Origin: Selaginella moellendorffii
Lineage: Eukaryota > Plantae > Lycopodiophyta
Length of the DNA: 64,000 nucleotides
Direction of reading: 5' to 3'
Assembly: GCF_000143415.4 (NCBI RefSeq)
Contig: NW_003314261.1
Location: 6,790,817-6,854,816, forward strand
The position numbers and the translations under genes are program-made. This document shows, piece after piece, positions 1,966-57,212 of this stretch; the stretch's first letter is position 1, and the number at the start of each line of letters is the position of its first letter. Under the pieces are notes generated by a model, which saw only the letters and a list, made by a program, of their open reading frames with translations, did not search any database and was not told the DNA's origin.

Positions 1966-2750
1966 TCACATGTAAAAAGCCGGCCTGTGTCCACTTGGTG
2001 AGGGCCACCTCCTCTGCACGAGTTTCATGGCAGATTCCCTTGCTTGTTTCAGCAACCAAAAATTAGTTTTGCCAACTTTTATAAATTCAATATATATCTT
2101 AGACGGCACTAAGCAGTCGGAATAAAGTATGGTGCTCTGTAGGAGTGCATTCTCTATGTGAGGCGTGAGCACTGCCTTTGCTTCTTTGCACACCTCTTAT
2201 CTGTTCAGCTCGCCTTTTCTGTTTTCTTTGCTTTCCAGCTGCATGCCACTGGGAAATAAAAAAGGTGGCCACTGTAAACCATGAAGCGTCTAGAGTTGAG
2301 CACACAAATGTCCCTTTGGATCTGGCACTGCAGGTGATTGCCACAACATGGACCTGATTATGCTCGGGAAATTTGAGCTAGGCTCTGATATTTGCCAACT
2401 TTTGCCAGGACGAATGTTCGACTGTCATCTCTGCCACGTCTGTAGCCCATTGTCAAACCGCAAAGCCTCTTTGGGAGGTTTGACATGTGACCACCATTTT
2501 CGTCAAAGTGCTCCTTGGTAGCAGGCAGAGGTTCTTGCACGGACCCTCTTTTGACACCAAAAACGCCACCTTCCGTCCCTTGTGCATGTACAAAGAATAC
2601 CTTGTACAAGCAAAACCAATTCCGGCAGCAAATTGGATGGCCTCATCGACATCGCCCTTTCCCAATCCTCTTGGCCTGGGAGAGAATGTGTCCAGGTTCT
2701 GTGTGAGTGATAGGAAGTGACGTCTAATCTTCTGTTGAAATCGATCAGGA
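1966..2750 (-). pseudogene. Possible degraded coding remnant of unknown family
   Basis: Protein-like reading segments (LPDRFQQKIRRHFLSL...GKGDVDEAIQFAAGIGFAC..., EAKAVLTPHIENALLQSTIL...) broken by stops. No diagnostic motif. Confidence 0.2.
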
Positions 2751-3072
2751 AGTCATATCAAAGAAGTTGTATGTAGGTGTTGTTTTGATCTTGTGGTGCC
2801 CAGGGAGAATCTTAAGATAGGAGGAGACTTTGCCTTTGACCAACAAGTTGGCATGGTATTTGGCTAAACTCTAACCAGACAGTTTTCTTGAATCTAAAGC
2901 TTGGTCTAATGCAACTGGTGGTTTTGGTGATTTTGTTGTAATACTTAGCTGAAAGACTGTCTCCTCTTAGCAAGAGTAGCCCAAGTTGTTTGCATTGAGA
3001 GCTCTATACACAGCAGGACACAAAAGAAAATTCCAAGTTGCAGGAAAAGCCCAGATGGAGACCTTTTGTGAT

Positions 3073-3091
3073 CACACACACACACACACAC

Positions 3092-3122
<31 letters not shown>
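3073..3122. repeat. Palindromic (CA)11(TG)14 microsatellite
   Basis: CA run 3073-3094 directly abuts TG run 3095-3122 around a central CATG. Confidence 0.95.
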
Positions 3123-4219
3123 AGATGGAAGGAAGACAAATGCATCCATCAACACTTACACCATCTGCCCCAAGAAGGGGACATTCTTTTTGTGTTTGCC
3201 ACCAACTTTGAGCAAAGGGAAGGGGCTAGAAGAGTTTGTGTGCAGTGCAGCCAAATCTCCACAAATATTTGATGCCTGTTAAAAAGGGCAAGGGCATTCT
3301 CCTCGCCCCAGCATATGCCCAGCTCCACTCAACCTTGTGCCACCCCTGTGTGTTTTATTCTATCCAGTTTAAAAGCAAGACACTGATTATGAATTCAGTG
3401 ATGCAAACAGTGGTACAGTGAAAAATATCATTGGGTTTTATAGTCTAATTTTTGCTGTCAAGATCAATAGAGCAGTTTGGATCCAGATTCTGCAATCAGC
3501 TGGTGTTACAATCGAAAACAAACCTTCGATTCATGCGATTCCCACGAAAGCACAGCTTAAACAAGCGCGAGTGCTTGACACCGTTCACAAAATATGGGGA
3601 CCGAATATTACATGTCTCGCGCCCATTGAGCCAGCGCAGGCACAACGTTATAACTTATCTGTTGCCGCTGTTCATTATAGCTTAAAAATATAATATTTTT
3701 CGAAGTTCAGGAGGCAAAAATACTATTTTATTTTATTGCTGTGTATATTAAAGTATTAAAAATCGAGAATAAAAGGATGGTCCTTTTCCCGTACAAGTTC
3801 ATGCCTGCCTATAAATCCGCATCATGAAAATGGTGTGTGGATGTGTAGAGTGCAGAGAAGCCCCTTTTTTGCGAAACAACACTTCCATTGGAACCAATCT
3901 ACCCAAGCTTTCGTTCATTCCATCCAGGCTAGGCTCCCATTTTATTTTTTTCTAATCGCTTAGTTTGCTTCCTTTAAATTCGCCCTGGAAGAGAGCCATT
4001 TCGCCATACACCTGTTACAGTGTGGCGCTTTGAGAATAGCCCTATTTAAATTCTTTGTGTCGCTCAAACGCGGTGGGCTTGATCGATGCGCGACGCTTCT
4101 TCGGCCGCAAGCGAGCGATTTCTATGATTCTGTGATCCGGGGCCACACCGCCATCGAGAGCGCATGATTGATGGCATCGAGTGTGTGAACTCCGCGGCTT
4201 GCCAAATATTTCGGTGTCC

Positions 4220-32399: not shown

Positions 32400-35300
32400 A
32401 TGTTCATGACCCCATACTATGATTCATTTCATGGCCATCATGCGCCAATATGAAAGGTCATGCAAGAAGGATTTAGTCACCCTTTTTATGAATCCAATTC
32501 ATGGATTTTTACCCAAATTATCCACCTTTTCATTTGTTAAGCTCACAATCTCATAACAAAATAGAAGACTAGAGAGAAAATTAATCAAGACAAGTCTGGA
32601 GTGATCAAATTATAGACAAATTGTAGGATAACATATAGACGGTTTTGTGTGTTTGGTTAATTGGACACTTGCATACAATCATCTATATACAGGAGGGTTT
32701 TACACCCACCATTAACTTAGAATTTTTACATTAGAAGATTTTAAAATTTTAATGTTATTCTTTTCACATCAATACTACATTTTTGTAATAAAAACTTTAG
32801 ATAATGCCAATAAGTTAGTCAATTTAATAATACTTTGTTCACACCAGCCATTAAATTATACTTAAAAGTGATTTAGAAACACATCTCTCAGAAATGTTGA
32901 GCATGTGATAGAAGAGAGGATTCCACAAACAAGGAATCAAAATTTCCCTTGTGTGAGAGGGAGAGAAGCCATGGATCGCGAAGCAAGAACTTCCTTGATC
33001 ACTGGCACTGCAAAAACAAAGATCTCTATAGAAGAGGAGGGAACACAGTCTTGGGTTTTAAGTATTTTCAAAATGCCAGTGGCGCCAACATGTTCTAGGG
33101 CCGCCTTGTTCTCAACACTTTGGACGGCCGATTCAAGCCAGTAGTGGCAGCAGCAGCGGTAGCAAAAGGTGGCAGCAATCACGAAGATCTTGGCTCCAGC
33201 CACCCCCATCCGCATCAATCTCCCTTGCCCTCTTCGCACCACCTCCTCTATCTCCCCCCTCCTCGAAAGCGGCAGCGGCAGAGGAGAGGAGTGCCACGGC
33301 GGCAATGACGATGATAGGAGGAGCTTCCACGGTGGCAGCGATGGCGTCAAGCGGCACGGCAGAGCTGAGCAATGCTCTGGAATCTGGTGTTGGGCACAAG
33401 TGCAAGAGCCCCGACGAGCCTAAGAGACTTCTCTAGTGGGGGCAGCGGCAGAGGCAGCGGAATGGGCGTGTCGTGGAAGTGACCAAGGGAGGAGGAAGAG
33501 GCGGCACTTGTGGTCACAGCACCATCACAGCTCTGCCAACAACACTGCCACCAATCACCACCACCACCACCAACACCACCACGAGGAGTCGTCACAGAAG
33601 ATGGCAATCCATGCAAATCGGAGGGTTGTGCGTGTGGAGAAGTAGTAGCAGCACGGCAGCGCTTGAATCTAGCCCAAGTGGTGCCCTATAGAATATTTAT
33701 GGAATTTAATCTTAATGCTACAAAAGTGTAGCATTAGGATTTTAGTGAAAAATGCAAAAGAAATGTTAATTGTAACATTAGCTTACTTTAATGTTTATTT
33801 CTGGTGTGAACAAGTTACCATTAAATTTAGCTATTAGATTAGAGTTTCAAAATCTAATATAATAGTGTGGTGGTGTGAATGAATTACCATTAAATTTCCT
33901 TCTTTAACATTTTTCCTTCCATTCCTTTGTTCCTCTTTTGAAAAAATGGTGTTAAAAAGTATTGGCTTCATGGAACATGGGTGCTCCAAGTTCAAAATTC
34001 TATAATTGAGCATCAAGTGTGTTTGCTATTCTTTGTGTTTATTATTTATGTGTTCCTTTTATTTTAAGGACAAATGTTCTTGATATCCTAGAATATGTTA
34101 GAAAGTGCTTACTTTAAAAGATTTAAACAATCATCATCTTTCTATATTTAAAAGAGCAAGTGCAACATATTTAATCTAGAAATTTTTTTCTTGGGTGGTT
34201 GAGATGGAAAAGAAGTTATAGCAGCAGAAGGTATATTTTCAACAATAGCATTGTTATTATTACTATTGTAATTCTTGAAATGTAAAAGGAAATATTTTCT
34301 TAGTAACACTAGTGCATTTATAACTATAGTGTGATTATTGTTTTTTAGCCAAGTATTTTCAGCTCTTTCTTTTTATTCAATTTTTAACTAAGGAGGTAAT
34401 TCTCTCCTAAGGATGCCAAGCACTAGAGTCTCTTACTACTAATGAAAAACATTTTATGAGCCATGTTTTGGCCCTTTTTGGTGTCTTGGATTGTCTTGGA
34501 GAATATGGTTATATATTTCATGAAAGAAATCTAAATCCTTGAAGTAAGACATTTTTTTTGTATTTGTTAAGCTCCAAAGAAAGTATTCCCCTTCTAAATA
34601 TGAAAGTCTTCATAAGGATAAAAGGTTTAGGCTTTATATTTATAATCTTTCTTCTTAAGAAACTTTCTACTCTAGTATAAGTATCTATCAAACATCTTTA
34701 GTGGAATTAGGGTGTTATCTAAAAAATGCTATAAGTTGCTAAACAAGTCAAGACATTTTATGTCGCGAATGTGACTGTGGATATCGAAAGTTATTTGTCA
34801 ATTAGTTCTTTTGGATATTCTTTCCTTACTGCCACGACAGCAAGAAATTGGTATTGCTAAATCTTTTATTAATCTCCACTTAAGCTAGTTGAGAAACTAA
34901 TCAATGGCCGTGTACTTAAATTGAATAAACATAGGGTAGGAACTCTCATATATTTCTTGCTAAGCATATTTAACCTAGTTTGAGAAACTCTTGTCATTGA
35001 TTTGCATTTGTTAGTGTTGGGAACCCCTGTGATATTGAATTTGGTCCTTCAATATTTACTAAATGATAGCTTACCATGTTTGTCAAACACCCTTGTTATC
35101 ATACACCTTATGTTAGCAGCATTCGGTTTCAATTGTTATTTATAAAAAGTGTGTAGATTTGCTAATTTGGCATATCTATAGAATATAAAGATTGTCTTAA
35201 ATACAATGGTGTTTATCCCATATCCAAATTCGCAATCTAACACCATTCTATATTTAATAAGTTTCAAATTTGTCGTAAAGACTAACTTCTTATACTAAGG

Positions 35301-38300
35301 GTGAAAGATTAAAGCATGTGTTCCTAGGGGGAGGGTGGGGGGGAGTTGCAAGGGGTTCCAAACGTATAGTAGGGATAATAGGTTAGGCATAGTTGATCAA
35401 CCTAAAGCATAGTTTAACTTTAATTTCTGTACCTATCTCTGTTTTGCATTTAATTTAGGTCTAAGTCTAAATTCCACACCATGCTAACTAATGGAATACC
35501 CATATCCTCACAATAGGGCATTAATATGTTGAAATAATGTTACTCCATTTGTTTTTATTTTGTATGTTGGTCTTGGCATTAGGATGTTGGTCACTCTAAG
35601 ATTGTTTTAAGTCGTTCTGTGCTTTTATCCCTTCACTCTTTAGGCTAAATGTTCAAGAGTCACTTCATGTGCCAATTTCTTCACTCCTTGGTTACAAGCT
35701 TAGAAGTTTGGCTCTATTTCTTCATTTAATGGCCCAAGGCATTAAAACTTGGGTTTTGTATCATTGTCTTTAGATATATGGTTATTTTTCATACTAGATT
35801 ATATAAACTTTCGCTTGGGCTCATAAAATAGATGTTAAATGTTCTATTTAATGTTAGCTTATCAGTGGTTTTATAAGTTATTCTATACCATAGGTTAAAG
35901 TAAATCTCCCCTAGGTTTGCTATGAGTGGCGAATAAACTAGTTTGTAGCTATTTAGCACGACAGTAGTGAATCCTTCCTATACATGATTAAGTGAATCAA
36001 TCAAGACTATAATGATTAATTTATTAATTCAAATAGTCATTGCCGCATTCTCTTATAAACTTTTCTTGGATTGGATTAAAGGCAGTGCAAATGCAAGTTG
36101 GAGGTTTAATCAAAGTTGAGTTTGAAAAGAGAGTCATTAGGGACAAAGGATTAAACACGTAAAATATCTTCTCTTCCTCAAGAGATGATTTGCAATGAGG
36201 TGTTAATTTATTACTTATGTTCACATCATATAATCAAGAATCCTTATCTTAATGAATGTTAGTTATGATGGTCTTACAAATGGTGAGTTGTGGGATGAAG
36301 AGTGGTGAAATGCTAAATTATTTTGTCTATGCTTGCTATTAAAGATTACAATGTTTAATTTTTTTTTGGGGAACCTTGTTATTACTCTTTGAATAGTTTG
36401 GTGTTGGATTAGTATTGAGTTTTAGTTAAAAAGAGAGTGGCATAAACTTGTCTATGTTGTGAATAAAAGTTAATGGTGTTGAGTGTTGTAAATCTCTATT
36501 AATGGGGTATGGCATTTATGTTGTATTTTGTTGAATCGAGTTGGCACTTGATACTCACATAAACATTTATAGTAATGATATAGATATTACTCATGTTGTT
36601 GTTCAATTGATAATCAAGTCATTGTATATATATCATATATATGTGGTCATAAGTAATGTGTTTATGAAGTTGCTTTATCAAATGATGATCAACCATAAAG
36701 TGGAGTTTATTTGTATATAGTAGCATTGAAGTAGCTTTAACTAAGTTCTCAATGATGACCCATTATACTAAGCTTAAGTTGGTACTTTGTTTCCTTGAAA
36801 ATTTGTAAAGTGATGGAAAAAGTTGTTCCATTCATTTGCGATAGTTTATTGGTTGATCTGTTAGCACTTGGAGTAGATTGTCAGATGGAAAAAGTGTGAA
36901 ATTAAGGCATTGACATTGTTAGCACTTGTGTTAATAAAAGTGACATTATTATTTTGAGTGATAAAGAATTTTCTTTAAACCTTGATTTTTTATGTCATTT
37001 TTTTAATTAGTGTTTTATCTTCATATTAGATTTTGAAGGTGATTGAAGAAGAGTGTTAATGCAATGTGGATATCCAAAGATATGGTCTTCGTGATTGAGT
37101 CTTGGGTATTTATTTACATTTTTGCAGATATTGATGTTGGCAGAAATTTGGGCATAATATTCAATACTTAAGCATATAGAATTTATTTTGAAGTGAAAAT
37201 TTGTGAAGTTGTTGGTAAGAGGAAGTTAGTTGAAATTTTGTATTTCTAAATTAGGAGTCATTCTTTCTTTAGGATAGAAAATTTTCCACAAATTTTTTTA
37301 GACTATTCCAATGGTTAGTATGCTGGTCAGTTTACTTGTAAACCATTCCATTTTCATAAGTCATTACACATTAGTGAAAGGGTTGAAGTTAACTTCGGTT
37401 AACTTAAACTTTAATATATAGTTTGTATGATGTAACCTAAAAGTGATGTTAACTTTTGGGGCTAAAGGCAATTGAGTTAAATAGAGTCTAGAGTTAGTGT
37501 AAAAAAGTGATTGTTGCACTTTTTTTAAAAAGGTAACTCTTGTACCTTTCTTTTGTAGTATTATGTTTAATAGTAGATTGCACTTTACATTTTTTTTAAA
37601 ATTTTATGAGAGTAGTGAGTTTTTGCTGATTTTAATTTGGTCTTGGTAGCCTTGCACCTTGGTTGAGGACAATGATATCCAACTTAATTGTTTGCAATTG
37701 AAATGTATTTAAATTATATGCCCTATAAGGTTATAAAAGTCATAGGTACCAATGAAAAATTCTTATTTTTATATATAATTATCTCTTGCCACAATACTCC
37801 CTCTATAATGGTTGTAAATCATTTCTATTTTCCTTGCATTGAGGCTTTTATATAATAAAGATGCTCTAGGATCAAATTCCTAAAAGGAAAAATGGGATAA
37901 AGTCTATGAAATTGAATAAAAAAAGTTATAAACATTTCCAAGTAAATTCAAGTAGTCCACTCATACCCAATGTATTTATTTATTTATTCTTTTTTATAGT
38001 AACACTATTAGCAAGTGAATTTCTATATATCAAAAGTATATATAAATTTCAATGATGTTTTTAAAGAAATACATCTATACTAGGTATATTTAAATCCTTG
38101 CTCTCTCTCTCTTCATTTCATTTCATGGAATAAAGTGCTAAAGTAAATAAAGTATAGTTAAGAATTTTATAGGATTGGATTGAAGAGCATTTTTACTTAA
38201 TCAAAGTAAGTATTTTTTATTTTTATTTTCTTTTTTTTTATCTCATCTTTTATAGGTTTTAAAATTTTTTTAGTATTTTTCTTTATCACTTATAGATTAT

Positions 38301-39620
38301 CTAGATGAAGTGTCAAGAAAATGTCAATAATAATTAACACATATGTACATGTATGTTTTATATAGATTTGAAAGATGGTTTTCATTTGAAACACTTTTTC
38401 ATCCCATTAAAACATCTTTAAAGACTTGTTTATATTTTAATTAATTCCTTGGTGGTATAATATTTATAACAATAAAGCAATAAAGGGAGGCCCATAGTAG
38501 ATTTCATGGACATTGTTATTAAATTTTTTTTATAGATGTTATATTTGGTTAATAGCAAATTTGGCACATATAGGAGTGGCCTCCCAACTCTAGCACATTC
38601 TATCTTTAAATCCTCCAAGCCTTTTCTTGGTTTACAATTTTATATACACTTAACCTTATATAACTACCTTTATGCATTTCCATCTCTTCCTACTAAACAT
38701 TAGTGGATTTTATTCAAATTTGTTTTGTGTTGTTATTAGCAGTTTTGGTGTTGAAGTCCACCAAGCAACATAATGTGTGTATAGTGGACCCCATTGCTGT
38801 GGCCTTACTATTATTAAAACCATTCCAATAAGATAATTGACTTGTTTTTTCATTTAAGCAATCATCTTTTATTTTTCAAAGTCACAAGAGTTTTAGATCC
38901 TTTTGTATATATGGAGAGAAATCTCAAAATTGTGTCATTAGTCATATTCAATATAATTCAAAAGCATTATAAGCTCTATAATGGCTTTGTCATTTAAAAG
39001 TTAATAAATACCTATGAGTTCCATTATACTATAGATCTATGGGAAACTTTAATGTTCTATAGGTATTAGTAAGTTTTGAGATGTATAGGAAGATGTTGTT
39101 TTAAAGTAGTATACTAATTTGTTAAGAAGAAGTACTTTGCAACATTATTACTAAAATAAAGATAAATAATATATTTTTTCATGCACATAATCAAATACTA
39201 ATGCAAGTGGCACTGATTTGAATTTTGCTATATATATACATGTGTGTGTGTGTCTGTGTGTGGTATGCACTAATGCAAGATTATTTTGTGAGTTACACAT
39301 GTCTGTTTAAACAATTCAATAATAAAACACATATGTGTTTTAAATTGATGTGATTGCAGTATAATTCAATCTTTTGCCACACCACCCACCCCATCCCTAT
39401 CATTGTGATATATATGTGGAATAGATAGAGATGAACAAATTTGTGAGATATGACACAATGTAGAGTAGACATAGTCAGGTGTGATATAATCAATTTTGGA
39501 ATATAAAATTTTACTATTCTAGTGCCGGCAAGGAGAGGCCTGCTTGTTGTTTCTTGTAGTGACGCAACCAAAATATTAAAATAGAACTTGGATAGATAAA
39601 CCAATAGTGAACCCAAAATA
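32400..39620. mobile_element. ~7 kb AT-rich, CG-depleted, gene-free block, probably a decayed transposon or other insertion
   Basis: Abrupt composition shift, very few CG dinucleotides and almost no ORFs over 60 aa in 34-39 kb, in a locus otherwise packed with genes. No termini or transposase motifs recognised. Confidence 0.4.
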
Positions 39621-39638
39621 ATGCATGAGAGAGATTAG

Positions 39639-39838
39639 CAACAAACAAATTTTACTGTGCTGCTGGCATATACTCTTTGCACTTGTATTTTGTTATCGCA
39701 ATTCACAACAAACAAAGTCTACTGTGCTACTGGCATATACTCTTTGCACTTGTATTTTATCATCATAATTCACAACAAACAAATTTTACTGTGCTGCTGG
39801 CATATACTCTTTGCACATGTATTTTGTCATCGTAATTC
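39639..39838. repeat. 3 x 67-bp tandem repeat
   Basis: Unit CAACAAACAAATTTTACTGTGCTGCTGGCATATACTCTTTGCACTTGTATTTTGTTATCGCAATTCA starts at 39639, 39706 and 39773. Confidence 0.95.
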
Positions 39839-39919
39839 CAAGCCATTGTGGAAACACTAACTTGATACGCAGCTCTCAAACCTCCAGCCCAAGTTTCTTT
39901 TGCTCTGTGTCTGTCAGCA

Positions 39920-41517
39920 ATGGCTCAGACCCCAAATCCAGAATCCCCATTGCTCAAGCTTCCCCGCTTCTTCTCTCTCAAAGCCGACAATGGTAAGTAC
40001 CTCATGCTTAAGTCCGATGGCACCCTTGCATTCGAGTCCGACACCACCACCCGATACACCACACACGAGGCGGTCTACAATGCCAATGATTCCAACGCCT
40101 CCTTCGTCATTTGCTCCGCCAACAAGCACTTCTGGCGCCGCCACTCCTCCACCTCTGCTGTGGTAGCCGACCTCAAGAACCCACCCAGCGACACCGATGC
40201 CTCAAACCGGTTCAAGCTCCAGCCCGAGGTCGCCCCAGGAAAGGTGGCACTCTCCTCCGTCCAAGACGGTCTCTTCCTCAAGCGCTTCAACACCCAGTAC
40301 CACGCGTTGCTCAAGGAGCCCAATGAGATCGTTTCCATGGTAGAAGTGGTGGAGTCGTCCTACTACGTTGTCAACATGCCCGAGTACGTGGGTCTCAAAG
40401 GTAACAATGCCAAGTACCTCAGCTGCCTCTCCGAGCCTATGGGCATTGGAGGCTTCCCGGACCAGTTCGCTTTCACAAACGAATCCGCGGATATTCGTGT
40501 TACCACCCACCAGGTACACTGCTGGTTTCGTCTTTCATCTGTTTTCACATTCCCAGGCCCCTCGACCAGGTGGCGTATCTCCTGAACGGCAAGATATCTC
40601 TTCGATCCAACCAAGCCGCCTCCTGGACTTCAAACAATTACTGGAAGGCCGATACAGACAAGTGGGTCGCACCTAGAGGTGACACTCCCGACTACGCTGA
40701 ATGCCAGTTCGATCCAGTCCGAGTGAACAGCACCACACTCGCTCTCAAGGGTCCCAATGGCCTCTACCTTATGCGTGGAAGCCGATCCTGGGTCACCAAT
40801 AATCCGGACGTGGTCTTTGCTGGGGCATCCGATTACGAGGAAACGTCCAGCCACCTGGTGGTCGAAGAAGCTGTGAGGAGCAGGCAAATCTTTAACGTGA
40901 CGTATCTGCTAGATCTGGCGAGTGCGAGCGAGGAGGCGCCAATCGGTGTCGCCTATGGATCTGCCACGAACAGAGGCAGCGGGCCTGCTGAGATGGAGAT
41001 CAGCGTGAGCAAGACCACCACAGTGAGCAACACCAGGTCCTTCCACAACTCGTTCACCTTCTCCGAGAGCATCACGCAGACTTTGACGCTCGGTGTGCCG
41101 TTCTTTGCCAACGAGAGCACCGAGATCCAGATCGGAGCCGAGCAAGAGTTTGGAAACCAGTGGGACGAGACTTTGTCCGAGGAAGTCACTTATCAGACGA
41201 CTTACAAAGTGACGATTCCTCCAGGGAAAACGGTACGTAAGAGAATCTGCCTGTGCGCCTTTGCTCGATTGATTGACTGACATCCTCTGCTATCCATCCA
41301 GGGAACTGTGCAGGTTGTGATCAGCACTGCGAAACTGGCCATCCCGTTCCACTACAAGACGAGGGACACATCGCTCAATGGCGTGGAGCGTGAGCCTGTG
41401 GATCGCATCGACGGTGTCTTTGATGGCGTGCTGGCTTTCAGGACTGATGCGGACATATATGACGGCACCCAGACATATCGCATCCCTGTTCCCATGAAGC
41501 TCAACGTTGCGAAATAG
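39920..41517 (+). CDS. Amaranthin/agglutinin lectin + aerolysin-type pore-forming protein (Hfr-2-like)
   Basis: Two agglutinin-like repeats (LPRFFSLKADNGKYL; MPEYVGLKGNNAKYL) followed by SRQIFNVTYLLD, Ser/Thr-rich alternating beta strands, VTIPPGKT and IPFHYKTRD..DGVFDGV. No signal peptide. Exons 39920-40513, 40570-41232, 41302-41517. Confidence 0.85.
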
Positions 41518-46575: not shown

Positions 46576-46910
46576 ATGGAGAGAGCGAGCATGGAGGTAG
46601 CCGGCATGGCGGAGGAGGATCAGCAGCGAATTGCGGGCATGATCGATGCGCTGCAAGCCCGCGACAGGTAAATGTCTCTGCGTTGGATGGGATTTTGGGA
46701 TGGATTTGGGCATTTTGGCGCAGCTTGAGGATGTATAACGCGCTGGTGGAGCGATGCTTTGGGCACTGCGTGGATTCCTTCCGGCGTAAGACGCTGGAGA
46801 AGCAGGAGGAGACGTGCGTGAAGCGCTGCGCGGAGAAATTTCTAAAGCACGCTATGCGGGTGAGCATGAGATTCCAGGAGCTCAACTATGACAAGGTTAC
46901 ACCGGACTAG
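46576..46910 (+). CDS. TIM9: Mitochondrial small Tim chaperone TIM9
   Basis: DSLRMYNALVERCFGHC...CVKRCAEKFLKH..RV.MRFQE with twin CX3C motifs; intron 46668-46723. Confidence 0.93.
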
Positions 46911-47055: not shown

Positions 47056-49022
47056 ATGGGCGGGCAGGCGCTTGCCTGTGATCATGGATTGCATTTCTCT
47101 CCTCGGGGAGTGATCAGCATCGTTCCATCTCGCCATGGCGTGAGAATTCCGCTTCGGCGTCATTGGAGCGGCAGGAGAGGTGTTTTTGCGATGCAATCAT
47201 CGCCGCGCATGCCATCGCTTGGTGCGGTGGTTTCGACTGCTTCCCGGGCCCTGGCGGCGGTGCTGTGCTGCGCGGCGATCACTGTGGCTGCTCTACCGGC
47301 GATGCTTTCTTGGCAGAAAGGATTGAATGCCACTGTCTGGGTCGCGAATCATACCATTCCAGGTGAGTGAAATGAGTAAAGTATCATTTCTTAGCAAGAT
47401 CTCTTCCAGGGAAACTTCGAGTTCGCAAGGCCACCCTTGGCTGGACGAAGCCTGTGGATTTGGAAGGAATTTGTCTCGAGGATGGTGATGGAGAGCGTGT
47501 TCTTGACATCCAAAACATCACGACTAAGGCGTCGCTTTTCTCGATCGTAACCGGAAGGAGTGGTTTCGGTAAGAATGGAAAAGAGATATAACTTCCTAGT
47601 TTACTCTTTTTCCTTCTTTGTTTCCAGATTTCATGAGAGAAAATCAAAACGTGGTTTCACAGGGGATTGCACGGTTTCTTCGCTATGGATGAACTTGCTC
47701 GAGGATCCAGAGACCGGAATCTCTCGTCTTGCTCGTGCGGTGGAATCCTCGACTCGTAAAGCACATCAGCAACCGAAGAAGAAAAATGCCGTTGTTTCGA
47801 CCGGAGTCGTGAAACTGGCATCCGACTTCAAGGCTGTTAATGGAGGATTGACGATTCGTGGCGGAGAGCTGCTTCTTCCAGCTGACGCAGCGGCTGCTCT
47901 TGGAGAGAAAATATTTGTCGACGTTCTGGTTGGCAGTCCTGCGAAAGAAAGATCCGAGGCTCTTAAGTCGGGTGGTGGTCTTCGTTCGTTGCCGGTGCAA
48001 ATCAATGCCTGGTCGGATTGTCTTCAAGCACAGGTGCTTGGATTTCTCAATGCTTCGAATCAGAAGGTCGAGCTCATCGAGCCTATAAAAATCGAGGTAC
48101 TGTTTTCTCTTTCGTCAATGATTGAGAAACTTATATATCTTTTCGTTTGTCGCAGATGGATCTCACTCCTGAGCTCGGTCGCCTCTACCTTGCTCGAGTG
48201 AATCCTTTGCTAGGGTATATAGTCGGTCCTGCTGTGGCCGAAAATGACATGCCTGACGTGATCTTGGAAGTCATTCCAAAAGAAATGAAGTTTCCTGCCG
48301 ATGAATACAAGCTACGCTTCGAACCAATGAGTGTGGTAAGCTGTTCAAAGTTGTACTTTCTTGTTCCTTCCCGAAAGTGCCAACTGTTTTAATGTCATCC
48401 TCTATAGGTATTGGCAAGAGGACCTATTCTCGATGGGATCTTCACGCTGCTTTCGCGAAGCAAAAACAAGGACGAAGTCTCCGGTGGAAAACGCCAGCTC
48501 AAGATGGAAACCAGTGCTATCGAGGCCGTAGCCAATGTGGATGGTCATTTAACGTGCCGACGCATTGATCTTCTCATTGGGGGTATGCTCTTGGATTCAC
48601 TACTTGTTCTTACTATTTCATCTCTAAACAGGCAAAGTTCATATTGCTACCTGGGGCGCGTTCAACTGGATCGAAGAGAAAATGAACACAAAACTAGTGA
48701 TTCCACAGACAACCCTGAAAGACTTTCTAGGATTGAACAACCTTCCGAAAAACTTCCATTTCCAGGTGATTAACCATCTCTCTCTCTTTACAGTTTTTTT
48801 CAGCTATATTTTTCCGTGTAGGTTCCTGTCCGAGGAACTTTCGATCGACCACAGATCGATCTCGGAGCTGCTGTCTTTCGAATCGCGCAGCTAACTCTCC
48901 ACCAACAAGCTGGCCCTTTCGCGAAAAGCTTGGTCGGAAGCTTTGACGATTCCACACCGGACCATGATGTTCCAGAACCCATCGATGTTCTTCCCTGGCA
49001 AGCTCACAAGTCAGGCGCGTGA
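47056..49022 (+). CDS. Putative plastid-targeted AsmA-like protein resembling chlamydial proteins
   Basis: Seven clean exons (47056-47362, 47410-47568, 47663-48096, 48156-48335, 48408-48582, 48632-48765, 48822-49022). Transit-peptide-like segment plus a TM helix, then a beta-rich body with VNPLL, HIATWG and VRGTFDRPQID, ending PEP...LPW. Confidence 0.6.
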
Positions 49023-50728
49023 ACAAGACCTTTTCCAAAGGTAAAAGTTACTCTTCTTTCCTCGTGGGTTTTCTCAAGTACTTGTAACTTTGACATCACG
49101 GTTATTTTTCAGAGTAACAGCAAACCACACTGTAATAACGGGTACGTATGGCATCTTTTGAAGTGGTATTATGGTCAACGTCCGGAATATCGTATTTTTC
49201 CCGTAACCTCCAAAACACCACTTTCAGCATGGGGCCTACGTTCGTACACAAATGGGACACTCCAATTCTTGTGAATCACTTGCTTTAATTTTTTTTTTCT
49301 GTGTGAGTCACGCAACAAGCTATCAATATGCAATCAAGGGAGTCGAGAAATTTGATCCAATTGGATCGAATTCGATCATCGCATAGGTGTAAAGGATTAA
49401 GGCGAAAAGAGGCAACGCACTCTCGCAAAGAGCTGCGTAAAGAGAGGCCAATTGTCCGAAAAGATCAAAAAGATAGGTGGAATCGTTACACTATGATGTT
49501 AAGAGAACCTTGATCATTGTGTCATGCTCGGTACTGTCGTACGCGTGAGCCACTCCTGGTTTGAGCCACGTGGTACGAAACGCCGGTCAACTCGCCGGCT
49601 TGGAATAATGGCGGGACATTCCGTCCTCGCCGGCGGGAAGAGTAACGGCGCTGGATCACGCCGTCTGCCACGTGGGATATAGAAGCTTCACTTCGCCGCC
49701 CGCGATATGTGTGTCCCGTTGCAAACGTTCCAGTGTGGTTTTTATTTTTGCCGCCTCTAGGGTTCTTGCGCGAAATATTTGGCTCTCTCTGACCGATAGG
49801 ATCGATCGGAAGCTGGAAGGTCAAATTGGCGGCGAGGAATCGAAGGGATGCGCGCGGCGCTAGCGAGCGTTTCTAGGTGGCCTACTCTACTCGCGCCTCT
49901 CAAATCAGTTAGTTTTCTCTCCTCTGCTCTCTATCTGTGATGTGGAGCGTCTCTTTCGTGCTGACAGGATCGTTGCGCTTCTTTCCCCCTTGCAGATCGC
50001 TCTCGGAAACGTTTGGTGCTGGAATTCGTTCTTGACGGCATACATTGGGCATGAACCGTGAGAAAATTCGTCCGAGAGTAAGCCTTGAATGAGACGCTTT
50101 TTGCTTCCAGGCCTTACATCTTGTCCAGGAATTCGCGAGACAATGTGTTCTGGGAGGCTTGTCTTCTAAGCAAGCAATCCTTGTGATAGACGCTGGCATT
50201 TATGTGAGCGGGGTGTCGCGTTTGATTTCGTGAGGTAGGAGCGGTGTTAGTGCAATCCAGTCTAGATCTCTTGGTGGTGGTGCATTTATGAGGCAGCGAG
50301 CTAGAGAGGATCATAGGTAGACCAATTTTTTGTGATTTTTGCGGGAGTTTTCTTTGTAAGAGGGGAGCTGTTTTTCTTTCTTTGTTTCCTTTTTTGGATG
50401 CTTTAGCGATTCGCCATTGAGTGAAAGCGGCTCCAGGTTCAGTCCCGGGATCCAGATTAAACTAATGCTGCCGCGGACAGCAGCCAGACTGGATCACTGT
50501 GTCTCTTGCAAAATTGGGCTTTTTGTTGCTGCATGCTCCTGCGAGATGGTCGATTTCTGTGACGTTTTTTTCTTCTTCTCGAGATCGAGGGACAGTCATA
50601 GAAGTTGAGCGAGGGACAGTCGTAGAAGGTTCTTTGATTGGAGTGACAGCGATGGTAGGAGATAAAATTCACATTGACGAGCTTTTTTGAACAAGGGAGG
50701 TGTGCGCCGAGACCTTGGCTCCCGGAAG

Positions 50729-53524
50729 ATGGGAAAGAAGGTGGTGGTGGAGATTTTGAGCGCGCACAATCTCATGCCCAAGGACGGGCACGGCTCCGCC
50801 AATGCGTACTGCATTGTGGAGTTCGACGGGCAGCGGCAGGCAACCAAGGTGAAGACCAAGGATTTGAATCCGGTGTGGAACGAGAAGCTCGAGTTTCAAG
50901 TCCGGGATGCGCAAAGCATGGCTCAGGAGGCTGTCCGGATTGAGGTGCTCACGGCGCATCCAAAGGAGAAGAACAACAGGAAGAAGGATGGATTTCTGGG
51001 AAGAGTCCGGATTGAGGGAATTAGCATCAAGAAACAGGGGGACGAGGCGATTGTGAGCTATTTGCTGCAGAAGAGAAGCCCCTTCTCGCACATCAAGGGG
51101 GAGCTCCGGGTCAAGGTGTACTGGGTGGACGAGGCCAAGAAGGAGGAGGCCAAGAAGGGAGAGGAGAAGAAAGATGGCGACAAGAAAGATGGAGAGAAGA
51201 AGGAAGGAGAGAAGAAAAATGGCGAGAAGAAGGACGAGAAGAAAGTTGAGAGGCCGCCACCCCCGACTGTGGTTCCAGCGGCCGATTACGTCCTGAAGGA
51301 GCGAGCTCCGGTGGTGACAGAGAAGGTGAGGACGTATGATCTGGTGGAGAAAATGCTGTATCTCTACGTCCGCGTCGTCAAAGGGAGGAACATCAGCAAG
51401 GAAGAGCCGTATGTGGTGATCAAGTTTGGAGAAGCTGTGGTCGCGAAGAAGAAGGCAACAAAGAAGGACAAAGTTGCTGTGTGGGAGGAAGTCTTTGCGT
51501 TCAGCAAAGACAAGATCCAGGGGCCGACAGTGGAGATTGTCGTTGCCGAGGACGAGAAGGGAAGCAAAGATTTGGGGAGCGTCGTGCTCGAGATCAGCGA
51601 CATTCCATTCCGTGTTCCGGACAGTCCTCTCGCTCCTCAGTGGCACTCCCTGGAAGATCGGAAAACCCGCGTGAAGAAGGATGAAGGCGAGGTGATGCTG
51701 GCAGTCTGGTCTGGGACACAGGAGGACGAGAGTTTTCCAATCGCCTGGCAGTCGGACACAGGTGGTCACGCGCACACAAAGGCCAAAGTGTATTTATCTC
51801 CCAAGCTCTGGTACCTGATGGTGAACGTGATCGAGGCACAGGACCTGGCCGTCTCGGACAAGTCGCGCTTTCCAAACGTCTGCGCACGAGTGACTCTCGG
51901 GCCATACCAGAAGTGGACGACCACGTTCCCGAAAACTCCCAGCGCCAGTCCGATGTGGAACGAGAGCAAGATGTTCGTAGCCGCGGAGCCTTTCGAGGAG
52001 CACCTGGTGGTGTTCGTGGAGGACAAAGTTTCCGCGGACAAGGCTGAGGTTCTCGGCAGCGTCAAGATCTCTCTCGCCGGCAACAAGCAGATCGCAAGGA
52101 GGAGCGATCCAAAGGAACCGGTGGCGTCCTTCTGGTACAACTTGGACAAGAACGGAGACAAGGGATTCAAAGGCCGCGTCCACCTGAGGCTGAGCTTCGA
52201 AGGCGGTTACCACGTCATGGACGAGTCGACGAGCTACATCAGCGACATGAGACCCACGGCTAAGCACCTGTGGAAGAAAAGCCTGGGGATCCTCCAAGTC
52301 GGGATTCTCCAAGCGAAGGCTCTCCTGCCGATGAAGAACAAGGACGGGCGCGGCACCACCGACGCCTACTGCGTCGCAAAGTATGGGCCGAAGTGGATCC
52401 GGACGAGAACCGTGGTGGACAGCCTCAACCCGAAGTGGAACGAGCAGTACACCTGGGAAGTCTACGACCCATGCACCGTCGTCACCATTTGCGTCTTCGA
52501 CAATTGCCACCTTAGCGACAACAGCAGCAACGCGCAGCCCGACGGCCTCATCGGCAAGATCCGGATCCGCCTGTCCACGCTCGAGAGCAACAAGGTGTAC
52601 GCCAACTCGTATCCGCTCATCGCCCTCCAGCCCAGCGGCGTCAAGAAGATGGGCGAACTCGAGATCACGGTCCGGTTGGCGACCACGACGCTCATCCACG
52701 TCCTCCAGGCCTACTTCCAGCCGCCGCTGCCGAAGCTCCACTACACGCGTCCACTGCCGGTGGCCGAGCAGGAGATGCTACGCATCGAGGCCATCCGGAT
52801 CGTGGCCGGGAGGCTGGGACGAGCGGAGCCACCGCTCCGGCAGGAGGTGATCCGCTACATGCTCGACACCGAGTCCAACATGTTTAGCATGCGGAGGAGC
52901 CGAGCGAACTACGCGCGGCTGACGAACGTCCTCTCGGGCCTGGTGGTGGTGTCGAACTGGTTCCACGAGATCTGCAAGTGGTCGTCGCCGGTGACAACGC
53001 TGCTGGTTCACGTCCTCTTCCTCATCCTCGCCTGGTTCCCGGAGCTCATCCTGCCGACGCTCTTCCTCTACCTCTTCCTCATCGGGGTGGCGCACTACCG
53101 GCACAGGCCGCGAGCGCCGCCGTCCATGGACGCGCAGCTCTCGCACGCCACAGATGGGTTATCCCCGGACGAGCTGGACGAGGAATTCGACACCATTTTC
53201 ACGAAGAAGCACCCGGATCTCGTCAAGGCGAGGTATGAGAGGCTGAGGCTGGCGGCGAGCCGGCTCCAGACGGTGGTGGGCGACATCGCTGCGCAGGGGG
53301 AGAGGGTCCATGCGCTGCTCAGCTGGAGGGATCCTCGGGCGACGGGGATCTTCATCACGTTTTGCTTCATGCTGGCCATCGTCTTGTACGTGGTGCCGTT
53401 CAAGGTGATCGCCATCCTGGTGGGGCTGTATGCGATGAGGCATCCCAGGTTCCGGGACAAGTCGCCCAGCGTGCCCATGAATTTCTTCCGCAGGTTGCCA
53501 TCGCTGGCCGATCGGATTCTGTGA
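50729..53524 (+). CDS. Multiple C2-domain and transmembrane protein (MCTP; FTIP/QUIRKY family), intronless CDS
   Basis: Four C2 domains (AHNLMPKDG..DLNPVWNE; YDLVEKMLYLYVRVVK; KVYLSPKLWYL; TDAYCVAKYG) and a PRT_C region (DELDEEFD, LSWRDPRAT, NFFRRLPS). Confidence 0.96.
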   Translation: MGKKVVVEILSAHNLMPKDGHGSANAYCIVEFDGQRQATKVKTKDLNPVWNEKLEFQVRDAQSMAQEAVRIEVLTAHPKEKNNRKKDGFLGRVRIEGISIKKQGDEAIVSYLLQKRSPFSHIKGELRVKVYWVDEAKKEEAKKGEEKKDGDKKDGEKKEGEKKNGEKKDEKKVERPPPPTVVPAADYVLKERAPVVTEKVRTYDLVEKMLYLYVRVVKGRNISKEEPYVVIKFGEAVVAKKKATKKDKVAVWEEVFAFSKDKIQGPTVEIVVAEDEKGSKDLGSVVLEISDIPFRVPDSPLAPQWHSLEDRKTRVKKDEGEVMLAVWSGTQEDESFPIAWQSDTGGHAHTKAKVYLSPKLWYLMVNVIEAQDLAVSDKSRFPNVCARVTLGPYQKWTTTFPKTPSASPMWNESKMFVAAEPFEEHLVVFVEDKVSADKAEVLGSVKISLAGNKQIARRSDPKEPVASFWYNLDKNGDKGFKGRVHLRLSFEGGYHVMDESTSYISDMRPTAKHLWKKSLGILQVGILQAKALLPMKNKDGRGTTDAYCVAKYGPKWIRTRTVVDSLNPKWNEQYTWEVYDPCTVVTICVFDNCHLSDNSSNAQPDGLIGKIRIRLSTLESNKVYANSYPLIALQPSGVKKMGELEITVRLATTTLIHVLQAYFQPPLPKLHYTRPLPVAEQEMLRIEAIRIVAGRLGRAEPPLRQEVIRYMLDTESNMFSMRRSRANYARLTNVLSGLVVVSNWFHEICKWSSPVTTLLVHVLFLILAWFPELILPTLFLYLFLIGVAHYRHRPRAPPSMDAQLSHATDGLSPDELDEEFDTIFTKKHPDLVKARYERLRLAASRLQTVVGDIAAQGERVHALLSWRDPRATGIFITFCFMLAIVLYVVPFKVIAILVGLYAMRHPRFRDKSPSVPMNFFRRLPSLADRIL

Positions 53525-54781: not shown

Positions 54782-56659
54782 TCATAGAACGTCAACGGTC
54801 CGGTCAACGGTCTCGGTGGCCAGGAGGTTTGCCAGGAGCACGTACCTGGATGGGCTGTGCTGCTCCATCTCCAGCACCAGACCCCCCACACTCTCCCCTC
54901 GCCTCACATCACTCTGCGTCCAGCACGCCCCCAGCAGCGTCCCCAGCGCCACATCGTCGGGCACGAATGGCATCGCCGCCAGCACCTCCTCCGACTCCTC
55001 CAGCATCCCCGCGCGCCCGAGAACATCCACCGCGCAGCTGTAGTGCTCCCGAATCGCCGCCACCCCAAACTCCGCCAGCAGCGCCCAGTTCCGCCACACC
55101 TCCGCCACCGCCCCCGCCGCCGCGCATCCCCCCAGCACCACCGTGAACGTGTTCGCGTCCGGCTGGATCCCCTCGAGCTTCATCGCGTCGAAGAGCGCCA
55201 TGGCCGATTCAAGCTGGCTCGACTGCGCGTAGGCCGCGATCATCGTGTTCCAGGCGGCGGCGTTCCTCTCCGCCATGGCGTCGAACGCCGCCTTGGCCTC
55301 GCCCACGCGCGTGTTCTTGGCCAGCGCCCCCACGATGGAGCTCCACGACACGACGCTCCACTGGGGCATCCGATCGAAGGCGACCTTGGCGTCGCGGAGG
55401 CACGAATTCCTCGCGTAGGCCGTGATCATCGCGTTCCAGGTGACGACCGTGCGCTGCGGCATCGAATCGAAGAGCGCCTCGGCCTCGCCAAGATGCCCGG
55501 TTTGGGCATACGCTACGATCATCGTTGTCGCGGAGACTACGTTGTGCTCGGGAGAGGAGTCAAAGATCTCCTTGATCGATCGCGGATCGCTGCCAAGGAG
55601 GCCGTGACAGAGAGAATTGAAGCACGCGAGGTGCCACTGGGGCATCCGATCGAAGGTCTCGCGCGCTCGATCCAAGAAGCCCAATCGCGCGAACGCGTTG
55701 AGCATCACGTTCCAGGTGATGGAATCCCTCTCCGGAAGCTGCGAGAACATCGCCATCGCGGATTCCAGATCGCCCATCGACCGCGAGTGGAGCGCTGCGT
55801 TGAGTGACACGATGTTCCACTGCGGCATTCGATCCAGGAGCTCCAGCGCTGCTGTGGGCTGCGAGGATTTCGAGCAGCGGACGACGATCACTGTCCATGT
55901 CCCGGGCTCTCTCACGGGGATTCGATCGAAGAGGTGTTTGATCTCTTCCAGCGGGCGGTGATCGGCGCGAGCCAAGAAGGTCGCGGTCCAGGAGACGCGA
56001 TTGTGCTGCGGCATTCGATCAAATGCCTGGATCGCGGCATCGGTGTCGGAATTCACGGCGAATGCCTCGGCGATCGCGTTCCAGGAGACGATGCTCCTCT
56101 CCGGGGTAGTATCGAAAGCGTTCTTGGCGCGTCTTGGATCCCTAGCCTCGGCATAGGCAGTCACGATCGTGTTCCAAGAGATCACATTCCTCTCGGGGAT
56201 CTTCGTGAAGACGAGCTCCATTGCTTCGATCGCGAGGCTGCCCGCGTACGCTGCAAGGATCGTGTTCCAGGTGAAGATGCTGCGATCGCGCATCCAGGAG
56301 AAGAATTGCGAGAGATCCTCCAGAAGGGCGTTCTTGGCATAGGCAGCAAGCATCGCGTTCGTGGGGACTGGATGCTTGGGCTCTGGCATTCGATCAAACA
56401 TCGCCCTCGCGGCGATCGGGTCACCATTCCTGGAGAAGGCCGTGATGATCGCGGTCCAGAGGAAGGCATCCGGCGGCTCAGTGCTAGCGGCGGCAAATCC
56501 CTCAAACACCGCCCGGGCATCGGCCGCGCTCCCCACGCTGCCATACATCTGGATGAGCTGATCGACGACGCGCTTGTCGGACCCCAGCCCCGCTCTCACG
56601 ATCCCGGCGTGGATTCGCCGCGCGTCGGCTAGATCTCTCGCGCTGGAGCAAAGCCTCAT
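54782..56659 (-). CDS. PLS-class PPR protein with E domain, no DYW
   Basis: Intronless tandem ~31-aa repeats (FDRMP..N.VSWN), HYSCAVDVLGRAG, MPFVPD...LLGAC, YVLLANL. Confidence 0.95.
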   Translation of the reverse strand: MRLCSSARDLADARRIHAGIVRAGLGSDKRVVDQLIQMYGSVGSAADARAVFEGFAAASTEPPDAFLWTAIITAFSRNGDPIAARAMFDRMPEPKHPVPTNAMLAAYAKNALLEDLSQFFSWMRDRSIFTWNTILAAYAGSLAIEAMELVFTKIPERNVISWNTIVTAYAEARDPRRAKNAFDTTPERSIVSWNAIAEAFAVNSDTDAAIQAFDRMPQHNRVSWTATFLARADHRPLEEIKHLFDRIPVREPGTWTVIVVRCSKSSQPTAALELLDRMPQWNIVSLNAALHSRSMGDLESAMAMFSQLPERDSITWNVMLNAFARLGFLDRARETFDRMPQWHLACFNSLCHGLLGSDPRSIKEIFDSSPEHNVVSATTMIVAYAQTGHLGEAEALFDSMPQRTVVTWNAMITAYARNSCLRDAKVAFDRMPQWSVVSWSSIVGALAKNTRVGEAKAAFDAMAERNAAAWNTMIAAYAQSSQLESAMALFDAMKLEGIQPDANTFTVVLGGCAAAGAVAEVWRNWALLAEFGVAAIREHYSCAVDVLGRAGMLEESEEVLAAMPFVPDDVALGTLLGACWTQSDVRRGESVGGLVLEMEQHSPSRYVLLANLLATETVDRTVDVL

Positions 56660-57212
56660 GCCCACGCATTTTTAGGGTTCTTCTATACCAGAAGAAAAAG
56701 AAAAGATACCAGAATCTAGGGCTTTTGACCTTTTACAGAGAATATACCAAAAGAAAGGAAAAGATACCAGAATCTAGGGCTCTTTACTTTTTGCCCACGT
56801 GAAAAGCGCTGAATATGGACGGACGGATTTCGTAGGTTAAACAGTGTATCAGATCACAAGAGGTTTTTATTTCGTATTTTCTTCGCTCCCTTGTTCGTCG
56901 TCTTGTTCTTCGATGGCGCACGCAGTCAAGGAGCGTGCATCGTGACGTCGTGCGCGAGAAAGATCCATTCCTCGTGTATCGGAGGAGCCGCCGCGAGGTA
57001 AATGCGCTCTCAATCGATCGCCCCTTTTTACTCAGTCCGATTCGATCAATTTCGCGATCTCTCCACCAGACCTGGTCTCGGCGTGGATTCTTGCAGCGAT
57101 TTTTAAAAGAGAGGAGCTGGGAATCCGGCGAATCGGCACTGTTTCTAGCTGGATTATGACCATCTTGTTCGTGGCTGTGGCAGATTAAAGGCGAGCAACG
57201 ACGTGCTGCGCA

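Follow-up and report, generated by a model that had tools for sequence, protein, structure and literature searches.

Plastids have one known AsmA-like envelope protein, TIC236. As in TamB, it is anchored in the inner membrane and extends across the intermembrane space, and we know of no reported affinity of TIC236 with the Planctomycetota-Verrucomicrobiota-Chlamydiota (PVC) superphylum. Smaller AsmA-like proteins are found in Escherichia coli, where YicH, YhjG and AsmA (PF05170 / DUF748 PF05359) combine a single N-terminal anchor with a beta-rich body in a periplasmic protein of 570–690 amino acids (aa). The chlamydia-like genes of Archaeplastida, for their part, are nuclear and have chlamydial genes as closest relatives. 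The gene described here, which lies at positions 47056..49022 (+) of a 64,000-nucleotide stretch of Selaginella moellendorffii DNA (contig NW_003314261.1; the whole stretch is referred to as the window), resembles these genes in both respects, its product also appearing to be organelle-targeted as theirs are, and differs from them in that, among eukaryotes, it was seen in streptophytes only, with no angiosperm member.

The original prediction, made from the DNA letters, had read this gene as a plastid AsmA-like bridge protein of chlamydial type. Judged by its sequence, the window protein is a member of a PVC protein family that had not been annotated before; among the relatives sampled, the nearest are ~490-aa proteins of Chlamydiota, encoded immediately downstream of glmS. 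With moderate confidence, we regard it as a nuclear-encoded, organelle-targeted member of this family, acquired horizontally, with one anchor and a beta-rich body of ~440 residues that would offer a groove for lipids. If this is true, non-flowering plants hold a second AsmA-like envelope protein, of PVC or chlamydia-like ancestry, and an envelope-biogenesis gene is added to the chlamydia-like genes of plants. Since the gene was seen in streptophytes only and in no angiosperm, it would be expected to escape surveys based on Arabidopsis, Chlamydomonas or red algae. On the bacterial side, the analysis defines a family, located beside glmS in Chlamydiota, that no Pfam model covers.

Relatives in the PVC superphylum and in streptophytes

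The C-terminal motif VPVRGTFDRPQID (48822..48860, +) was back-translated to fish for bacterial relatives, and the resulting pattern, [IV]P[IV]xGT[FL][DE]xPx[VI][DE], was scanned in 185,579 bacterial genomes, one per species. The 85 matches were distributed among Planctomycetota (58), Verrucomicrobiota (5), Chlamydiota (5), Kiritimatiellota (3) and others (14), so that 71 of them fall in the PVC superphylum; none came from Cyanobacteriota. The open reading frames (ORFs) containing the motif were compared with a profile made of plant sequences alone, and four from Chlamydiota, belonging to three Anoxychlamydiales metagenome-assembled genomes (MAGs) and to Chlamydiae bacterium RIFCSPHIGHO2_12_FULL_27_8, scored 105–124 bits. 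About 99 of these bits come from a C-terminal stretch of ~130 residues, far above what the 13-residue motif could yield.

Two blocks of the protein are conserved. The N-terminal block (47260..47709, +; aa 69–171) covers exons 1–3 together with both introns that separate them. It was not used for the fishing, and the plant profile matched it in 43 ORFs, 38 of Planctomycetota, 4 of Chlamydiota and 1 unclassified; it occurs in proteins of both Chlamydiota and Planctomycetota and is similar to the start of AsmA/DUF748 proteins. The C-terminal block (48480..49004, +; aa 385–524, exons 5–7 and the two introns between them) comprises R.D.L, WG, LP..Y..IP..GTF..P.ID, a helix and P..PW, and aligns over its full length only with the Chlamydiota relatives (~28% identity, 132 columns). 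The resemblance of both ends to Chlamydiae and other PVC bacteria, which the original prediction had proposed, was thus recovered, at 104–124 bits for Chlamydiota and 30–57 bits for the N block of Planctomycete members.

With 481–495 aa (483–492 aa in the four ORFs of the motif scan), the closest chlamydial relatives can be aligned with the mature plant protein from one end to the other. In a BLASTP comparison P0001, the S. moellendorffii protein LOC112351097 (see below), aligns through residues 65–523 with residues 18–472 of the chlamydial protein L076 at E 2e-19 and 21% identity, and the two chains end alike, in VPEP..LPWQ (plant) and IPP..PFPWE (chlamydial). A joint alignment of 4 chlamydial and 8 plant sequences has 22 invariant columns, spread over the full length, which include LP..S, W..P, R.D.L, WG, P.G..P and P..PW. 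The chlamydial proteins share with the plant one its mature length, an N-terminal anchor ending in LP..(L/F)S and the IP..GT..P.ID string; they differ in having no targeting leader, no introns, AT-rich genes in an operon-like arrangement with glmS, and an overall identity of ~21%.

Chlamydial N-terminal patterns, used as seeds for scanning metagenomes, led to 7 further loci, of which 2 have the same sequence as loci from genomes. The fishing motif is missing from several of them, which still reach 104–124 bits with the plant profile. For L096 and L097, two of the three most divergent new loci, a chlamydial origin is supported by neighbouring genes 62–77% identical to those of named chlamydial contigs; L098 has no neighbouring genes in common with these contigs. 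A search of bacterial genomes with patterns from the plant alignment yielded 156 pattern matches, none of which was confirmed, and tblastn of the Calypogeia orthologue against plasmids gave no match.

The end-to-end alignment with the chlamydial proteins speaks against the notion of a shortened plant protein from which much of the middle is missing, and this part of the original prediction had to be abandoned. What does hold is that the bacterial family has conserved ends and a variable middle. Planctomycete members range from ~460 to 1320 aa, two of the metagenome loci encode long forms (852 and 1014 aa) and others within the same family reach ~1150–1320 aa; by its alignments the plant protein is of the short form throughout. 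The proteins of Planctomycetota, Verrucomicrobiota and Kiritimatiellota (460–1320 aa) resemble the plant protein in the N block and the C-terminal motif, but only ~59 columns of their C-terminal domain can be aligned and many are 2–3 times longer. These relatives differ in how many beta units lie in the middle, a variation that is usual in groove proteins.

In Chlamydiota the family gene follows glmS directly, with an overlap or a gap of a few nucleotides, at no fewer than six loci (L027, L029, L076, L087, L092 and L095), and at L097 glmS lies ~1.9 kb upstream. Examples of Anoxychlamydiales MAG contigs with the unannotated relative are JAAKFN010000039, JAAKFX010000015 and JAAKFW010000067. The order is amino-acid permease, glmS (a GATase and two SIS domains), family gene and a convergent DeoC-type aldolase gene. 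Glucosamine-6-phosphate, the product of the glmS enzyme, is the entry to UDP-N-acetylglucosamine (UDP-GlcNAc) for peptidoglycan and lipid A; the adjacency therefore indicates an envelope function, without defining which. The window gene is not beside glmS but between genes for Tim10/DDP and C2/PRT_C proteins, as expected of a nuclear gene, and this is no argument against homology. At L029, an Anoxychlamydiales contig, an extra AAA_14/DUF4143 ATPase gene (1377-2504) is inserted between the family gene and the aldolase gene.

The plant family was assembled from a phmmer search with exon 3 (144 aa, the largest exon) against a library of 1.84 billion representatives, from two word searches and from cluster look-ups. 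Members were found in Zygnematophyceae (Mesotaenium), liverworts (Riccia, Calypogeia), mosses (Sphagnum, Physcomitrium), lycophytes (Diphasiastrum, Selaginella), ferns (Adiantum, Ceratopteris, Psilotum, Pteridium) and gymnosperms (Taxus and a Taxus-like Logan cluster), which includes the green algal and bryophyte homologues that had been foreseen. They are 34–44% identical to the Selaginella protein and have many invariant residues in common with it. None of the named matches in any of these searches is from an angiosperm, in keeping with the earlier suggestion of an absence from flowering plants. The distribution suggests that the family was gained in a streptophyte ancestor, retained from Zygnematophyceae to gymnosperms and lost before or within the angiosperm stem; we infer this from the members seen.

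The word searches, run with P0001 and with the plant alignment, returned the plant family only. Unnamed short matches are single-exon ORFs that stop at a common exon boundary (...KAE/V); most are akin to the bryophyte members by eye, and P0013 is unplaced. Three exon-3 matches to repeat proteins (P0007, P0021 and P0024) were rejected as spurious, being due to a GGxL..P.DAAAA stretch. The annotated protein P0010 (Taxus chinensis KAH9318378.1) joins ~440 residues of retroelement-like sequence to a C-terminal family part of 390 residues, probably an artefact of the gene model, and the Logan cluster P0004 (601 aa) appears to be an intact gymnosperm-type protein. The Riccia orthologue bears the UniRef name 'AsmA-like C-terminal domain-containing protein', and literature searches found no paper describing this plant family.

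Probable AsmA-like affinity, predicted architecture and possible function

The N-terminus of the plant proteins, from the anchor onward, matches Pfam DUF748 in 4 of 19 members, co-linearly over profile positions 6–177, and across plant and Planctomycete members the matches always lie within positions 6–183. Planctomycete members score 24–41 bits with this model (E down to 1e-10), and one of them reaches 28.5 bits with Pfam AsmA (cut-off 29.8). Both domains, DUF748 and AsmA, are carried by E. coli YhjG. In a profile comparison with hhalign, the N block (54 sequences) aligned with a four-sequence AsmA-family profile, made of E. coli AsmA, YhjG and YicH plus Chlamydiota L054, at 90.1% probability (P 1.6e-6, 98 co-linear columns). 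Against YicH alone the value was P 2e-5 and against YhdP, TamB and L054 ~1e-3, and eight unrelated controls gave P of at least 0.045. A word search with YhjG added no profile diversity, the best 120 of 1369 matches being all at least 86% identical.

At the other end of the protein, comparison of the C block with the C-terminus of YhdP yielded P 2e-4 to 6e-3 and with YhjG P 1.5e-3, controls being at 0.065 or above. In YhdP the aligned region is formed by the last ~90 residues, including ISGPLDDPQIN, and in YhjG the string YVRGTFKNPQ is followed by a helix at the C-terminus, as in the plant protein; by eye, both strings are like the motif used for the fishing. The bacterial phospholipid bridges YhdP and YdbH-YnbE differ from the plant protein in size (879–1266 aa), and the plant protein has no known partner gene. 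L054 is itself a 910-aa AsmA/DUF748 protein above the Pfam thresholds, encoded at 2013-4742 (+) in the Chlamydiota MAG ELA517 and carrying the same C-terminal motif; Chlamydiota therefore possess a standard AsmA protein alongside the divergent short family.

With respect to TIC236 and TamB the plant protein is clearly distinct in sequence, as the original prediction had proposed, and represents a separate lineage. None of the 19 family members has a TamB/DUF490 (PF04357) domain, with which TamB and TIC236 end, and these two are far larger than the 529 aa (~475 aa when mature) of the plant chain. TIC236 is also present in angiosperms, according to papers on Arabidopsis and maize.

A basic, Ser/Thr-rich extension with almost no acidic residues occupies aa 1–54 (47056..47217, +); residues 1–60 contain 8 Arg/Lys, 8 Ser/Thr and 1 Asp/Glu. 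It is missing in the bacterial relatives and looks like an organelle-targeting leader. The extensions of the plant orthologues, 50–146 aa long, are unrelated in sequence, basic and acid-poor. A single hydrophobic anchor helix follows (47224..47310, +; ~aa 57–85), ending in the conserved LP..LS; its strongest hydrophobic 19-mer spans residues 66–84 (Kyte-Doolittle 2.38) and AlphaFold2 places a helix at residues 55–85. Leader and anchor, both read correctly from the DNA, give together with the remainder of the chain an arrangement of one N-terminal anchor and a large soluble beta-rich domain by hydropathy and AlphaFold2, which is characteristic of AsmA-like proteins.

The AlphaFold2 model calculated with 19 plant sequences had a mean predicted local distance difference test (pLDDT) score of 75.5. 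With 30 sequences, bacterial relatives included, and the leader removed, the value rose to 85.1, with a predicted template modelling (pTM) score of 0.78; the leader itself was at pLDDT 31–36. From the anchor helix the model passes to a second helix and then to four or five groups that together comprise ~21 beta strands, with short helices between the groups, and it closes with three C-terminal helices. In the predicted strands hydrophobic and polar residues alternate at 0.71, against 0.65 when shuffled, a value reached by 5 of 1000 shuffles. In two Foldseek runs against the Protein Data Bank (PDB; 350,542 chains) LPD-3, the N-terminus of Vps13 and TamB (from TamAB) appeared at ranks 2, 4, 15 and 20 in the first run and at ranks 1, 2, 5 and 11 in the second; these are the few repeating-beta-groove (RBG) lipid-transfer proteins in that database. 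A weak match at rank 22 of the second run was 7vcf_I, chain I of the Chlamydomonas TOC-TIC supercomplex.

Several results count against an AsmA-like groove protein. No model of Pfam or NCBIfam matches the window protein, searched exon by exon, or P0001, and the chlamydial short forms have no Pfam match either. The DUF748 matches of the plant orthologues amount to 11–27 bits against a cut-off of 50 (best E 1.3e-6), below the gathering score. Comparing full-length family profiles with individual AsmA-like proteins of E. coli by hhalign yielded P ~0.01, which is not significant, at places that are positionally sensible. Neither Foldseek run produced a match at E <=0.001, TM-scores being 0.1–0.18; in the second run the RBG proteins had E of at least 0.04 and TM-scores up to 0.18. 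A sequence-profile search of the PDB gave no match, and the hydrophobic groove is a putative feature of the model. AsmA_2 was matched in none of 19 members. The small AsmA proteins of E. coli show no significant full-length similarity to the plant protein, which stays below the Pfam thresholds. The AsmA-like membership claimed at the outset is moderately supported, with the N-block comparison in its favour and with Pfam matches below threshold and Foldseek matches below significance; of the beta-groove fold expected from AlphaFold and Foldseek the ~21 strands and the high-ranking RBG proteins were found, but no significant match. From sequence comparisons, and with moderate confidence, we take the family to form a divergent branch within the envelope proteins of AsmA-like type (DUF748/AsmA).

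The following mechanism can be envisaged on the model of TamB, YhdP, YdbH and the small AsmA proteins. A streptophyte ancestor would have acquired the gene horizontally from a chlamydia-like, or at least PVC, bacterium, and the transferred gene would later have gained introns and a targeting leader. This leader would direct import into an organelle, most likely the plastid, where the anchor would arrest in the inner of the two envelope membranes. Built of about four beta units of five strands, with one face hydrophobic, the body would extend as a short groove into the intermembrane space, so that lipids or lipid-linked envelope precursors could move towards the outer membrane. Since ~four units are probably too short to span this space alone, an outer-membrane partner would be needed, in the way that TamA serves TamB and YnbE serves YdbH; the notion of a partner for a short groove derives from YdbH-YnbE (PMC11126948). 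For small bacterial AsmA proteins, transfer of glycerophospholipids in vitro has recently been reported (PMC13542527). The plant protein probably acts between the two envelope membranes of an organelle; its plastid location and lipid transfer are put forward as hypotheses.

The same homology could serve another job: as a scaffold or chaperone, and not as a lipid conduit, the protein might support protein traffic or the assembly of beta-barrels in the intermembrane space. Such a role was first proposed for TamB and TIC236, which have been connected with Omp85 partners and with the import or assembly of proteins (PMC10345924), and a body of about four units, which looks too short alone, would suggest an Omp85-type or lipoprotein partner. 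We nevertheless find such a role unlikely, given that the plant protein has no TamB/DUF490 domain and that in recent work TamB and small AsmA proteins are credited with the transfer of lipids (PMC13507460, PMC13542527).

The distribution of the family raises a different possibility. Complete plastid peptidoglycan gene sets with class A penicillin-binding protein (PBP) have the same range, from a streptophyte alga to gymnosperms and not angiosperms (PMC12681378). The retention of the family in the same plants may bear on how envelope lipids and wall are handled in such plastids. The protein might be a chlamydia-derived bridge that entered the streptophytes apart from the cyanobacterial TamB/TIC236 and acts with the peptidoglycan wall, moving lipids, carrying or organizing lipid-linked wall or envelope precursors or tethering the membranes across a space that contains the wall, and that flowering plants lost along with this wall (class A PBP). 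The chlamydial gene is translationally coupled or adjacent to glmS, whose enzyme performs the first step towards UDP-GlcNAc, and on this reading the coupling would be a bacterial trace of a wall-linked role. The parallel distribution and the glmS coupling are what suggest the link, and they are correlations only; glmS feeds several pathways, no peptidoglycan-binding domain is present, and peptidoglycan genes occur in prasinophytes and glaucophytes too, where the family was not found in searches of limited sensitivity. A role bound to the wall is for these reasons kept as a tentative suggestion of low probability.

Returning to the lipid-groove protein of the plastid envelope, its destination could instead be the mitochondrion, or both organelles. 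A basic, acid-poor leader suits either one, and the leader composition of the plant members (Arg+Lys 10–17%, Asp+Glu 2–10%, Ser+Thr 9–22%) is consistent with organelle targeting without separating plastid from mitochondrion. The Ser/Thr content and the leader lengths of 50–146 aa are more plastid-like, a weak argument, and we consider mitochondrial or dual targeting rather improbable.

Origin of the plant gene

For the phylogeny, the N block (~100 columns) and the C block (~138 columns) were cut with block hidden Markov models and concatenated. The tree was calculated with IQ-TREE (LG+C20+F+G4 with posterior mean site frequencies, PMSF) from 54 sequences, 32 of them from Planctomycetes, and 208 columns, leaving out L057 (long branch) and the partial plant rows without N block (one without C block). 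The plants (support 100/96) and the Chlamydiota-type proteins (100/98) each form a clade, and both are united against the Planctomycetes with 99/99. Over the alignable C block the plants share 132 columns with Chlamydiota versus 59 with Planctomycetes. PVC ancestry of the plant gene is likely by these comparisons, and a chlamydial donor is the best current candidate.

Other observations weaken this origin. When the tree is calculated from the N block only (99 columns), plants and Chlamydiota are each monophyletic, but Chlamydiota group with Isosphaeraceae and Kuenenia (88/71), the plants being adjacent; the exclusive grouping of plants with Chlamydiota rests on the C-terminal half, because the N block by itself does not give it. 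Plant proteins have low and similar identities to Chlamydiota and to Planctomycetes (21–29%), and in the unrooted tree they are sister to the sampled chlamydial clade and not nested in it. The topology alone gives no direction of transfer. Chlamydial origin by phylogeny, as originally predicted, is accordingly supported by the two blocks together and left unresolved by the N block. The direction from bacterium to plant is inferred from the breadth of the family in PVC bacteria, its eukaryotic restriction to streptophytes, and the plant-specific leader and introns.

The bacterial sample is a biased one, all relatives having been fished with the plant-derived motif or with chlamydial N-terminal patterns, and the sole exhaustive search, made with the poorly conserved exon 3, missed even the chlamydial relatives. 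Closer relatives could thus exist in unsampled lineages, cyanobacteria included, and with an N block that does not favour Chlamydiota one may ask whether any PVC transfer took place, or whether this is an old endosymbiotic (cyanobacterial) or vertically inherited gene with its nearest relatives unsampled. The motif matches argue otherwise, with none of 85 in Cyanobacteriota and 71 in PVC bacteria, as does the occurrence of eukaryotic members in streptophytes only. The AsmA and DUF748 models of Pfam cover the ordinary proteobacterial and cyanobacterial members, and they give at most 27 bits on plant members, compared with more than 100 bits for chlamydial proteins under the plant profile. An origin without PVC transfer is accordingly judged quite improbable.

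Transfer from plants to chlamydiae, or bacterial contamination, has nothing but the unrooted tree in its favour and is extremely improbable, the former in view of a bacterial family with short and long forms and conserved synteny in four PVC phyla, the latter, excluded as the source of the window gene by its plant nuclear neighbours, in view also of six spliceosomal introns, orthologues in at least 12 plant genera and, in some of these, an ORF equivalent to exon 3 that ends alike at the KAE/V boundary.

Gene structure and surroundings

The prediction of an intact gene of 7 exons and roughly 530 aa proved accurate. With splice sites located by hand, the spliced coding sequence measures 1590 nt and is open over 529 codons up to a TGA, the six introns (47, 94, 59, 72, 49 and 56 nt) being all of the GT..AG type. 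Exon 1 (47056..47362, +) encodes aa 1–102 and the first base of codon 103, and exon 2 (47410..47568, +) aa 103–155/156, with KLRVRKATLGWTKP... in it. Exon 3 (47663..48096, +; aa 156–300) forms the middle part and is the least conserved. Exon 4 (48156..48335, +; aa 301–360) contains EMDLTP...NPLLG...MPDV, which is almost invariant across the plant orthologues. The C-terminal part is encoded by exons 5 (48408..48582, +; aa 361–418/419), 6 (48632..48765, +; aa 419–463) and 7 (48822..49022, +; aa 464–529 and the stop). All the peptides quoted earlier are present in the translation: LPAMLS, NHTIPG/KLRVRKATLGWTKPVDLEGICLEDGDGERVL, LARVNPLL, RRIDLLIGG/KVHIATWG, LGLNNLPKNFHFQ/VPVRGTFDRPQID and VPEPIDVLPW.

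P0001, annotated as an "uncharacterized protein" of 529 aa, was the top match of the exon-3 phmmer search. It aligns with the splice model without gaps, and 12 of 529 residues differ (97.7% identity). The gene model is validated by this protein, since a search with exon 3 led to a chain of the same length and ungapped alignment. From the few differences, the window gene and P0001 are presumably two alleles, P0001 representing the other haplotype.

The genes around it, for a Tim10/DDP protein, a C2 and PRT_C protein, a pentatricopeptide-repeat protein and an agglutinin/aerolysin-like protein, are plant genes and therefore define a land-plant nuclear context, the DNA being neither human nor bacterial. 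The small two-exon Tim10/DDP zinc-finger gene (46577-46910, +) belongs to a family of chaperones of the mitochondrial intermembrane space, and 146 bp separate its end from the start codon of the studied gene downstream. Downstream, an intronless ORF of 945 aa (50687-53524, +) contains four C2 domains and the plant PRT_C domain, as in proteins of the MCTP/QUIRKY type, and it is followed on the opposite strand by the pentatricopeptide-repeat gene (54782-56665, -; 627 aa, intronless).

Further upstream, two adjoining open frames at 39920-41280 (+) encode an agglutinin-type (amaranthin-like) domain and then an aerolysin / ETX-MTX2 pore-forming-toxin-like domain, both with weak Pfam matches (E ~1e-4). 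Together they have the appearance of one fusion gene for a plant lectin and an aerolysin, which an intron or a frameshift may have divided. Just upstream of it, a 67-bp unit is repeated three times at 39639-39838. These repeats lie within an AT-rich stretch of ~6 kb (~34000-40000), with a GC content of 0.29–0.32 versus ~0.50 elsewhere in the window and no ORF of 110 aa or more, which may be degraded repeat or transposon sequence.

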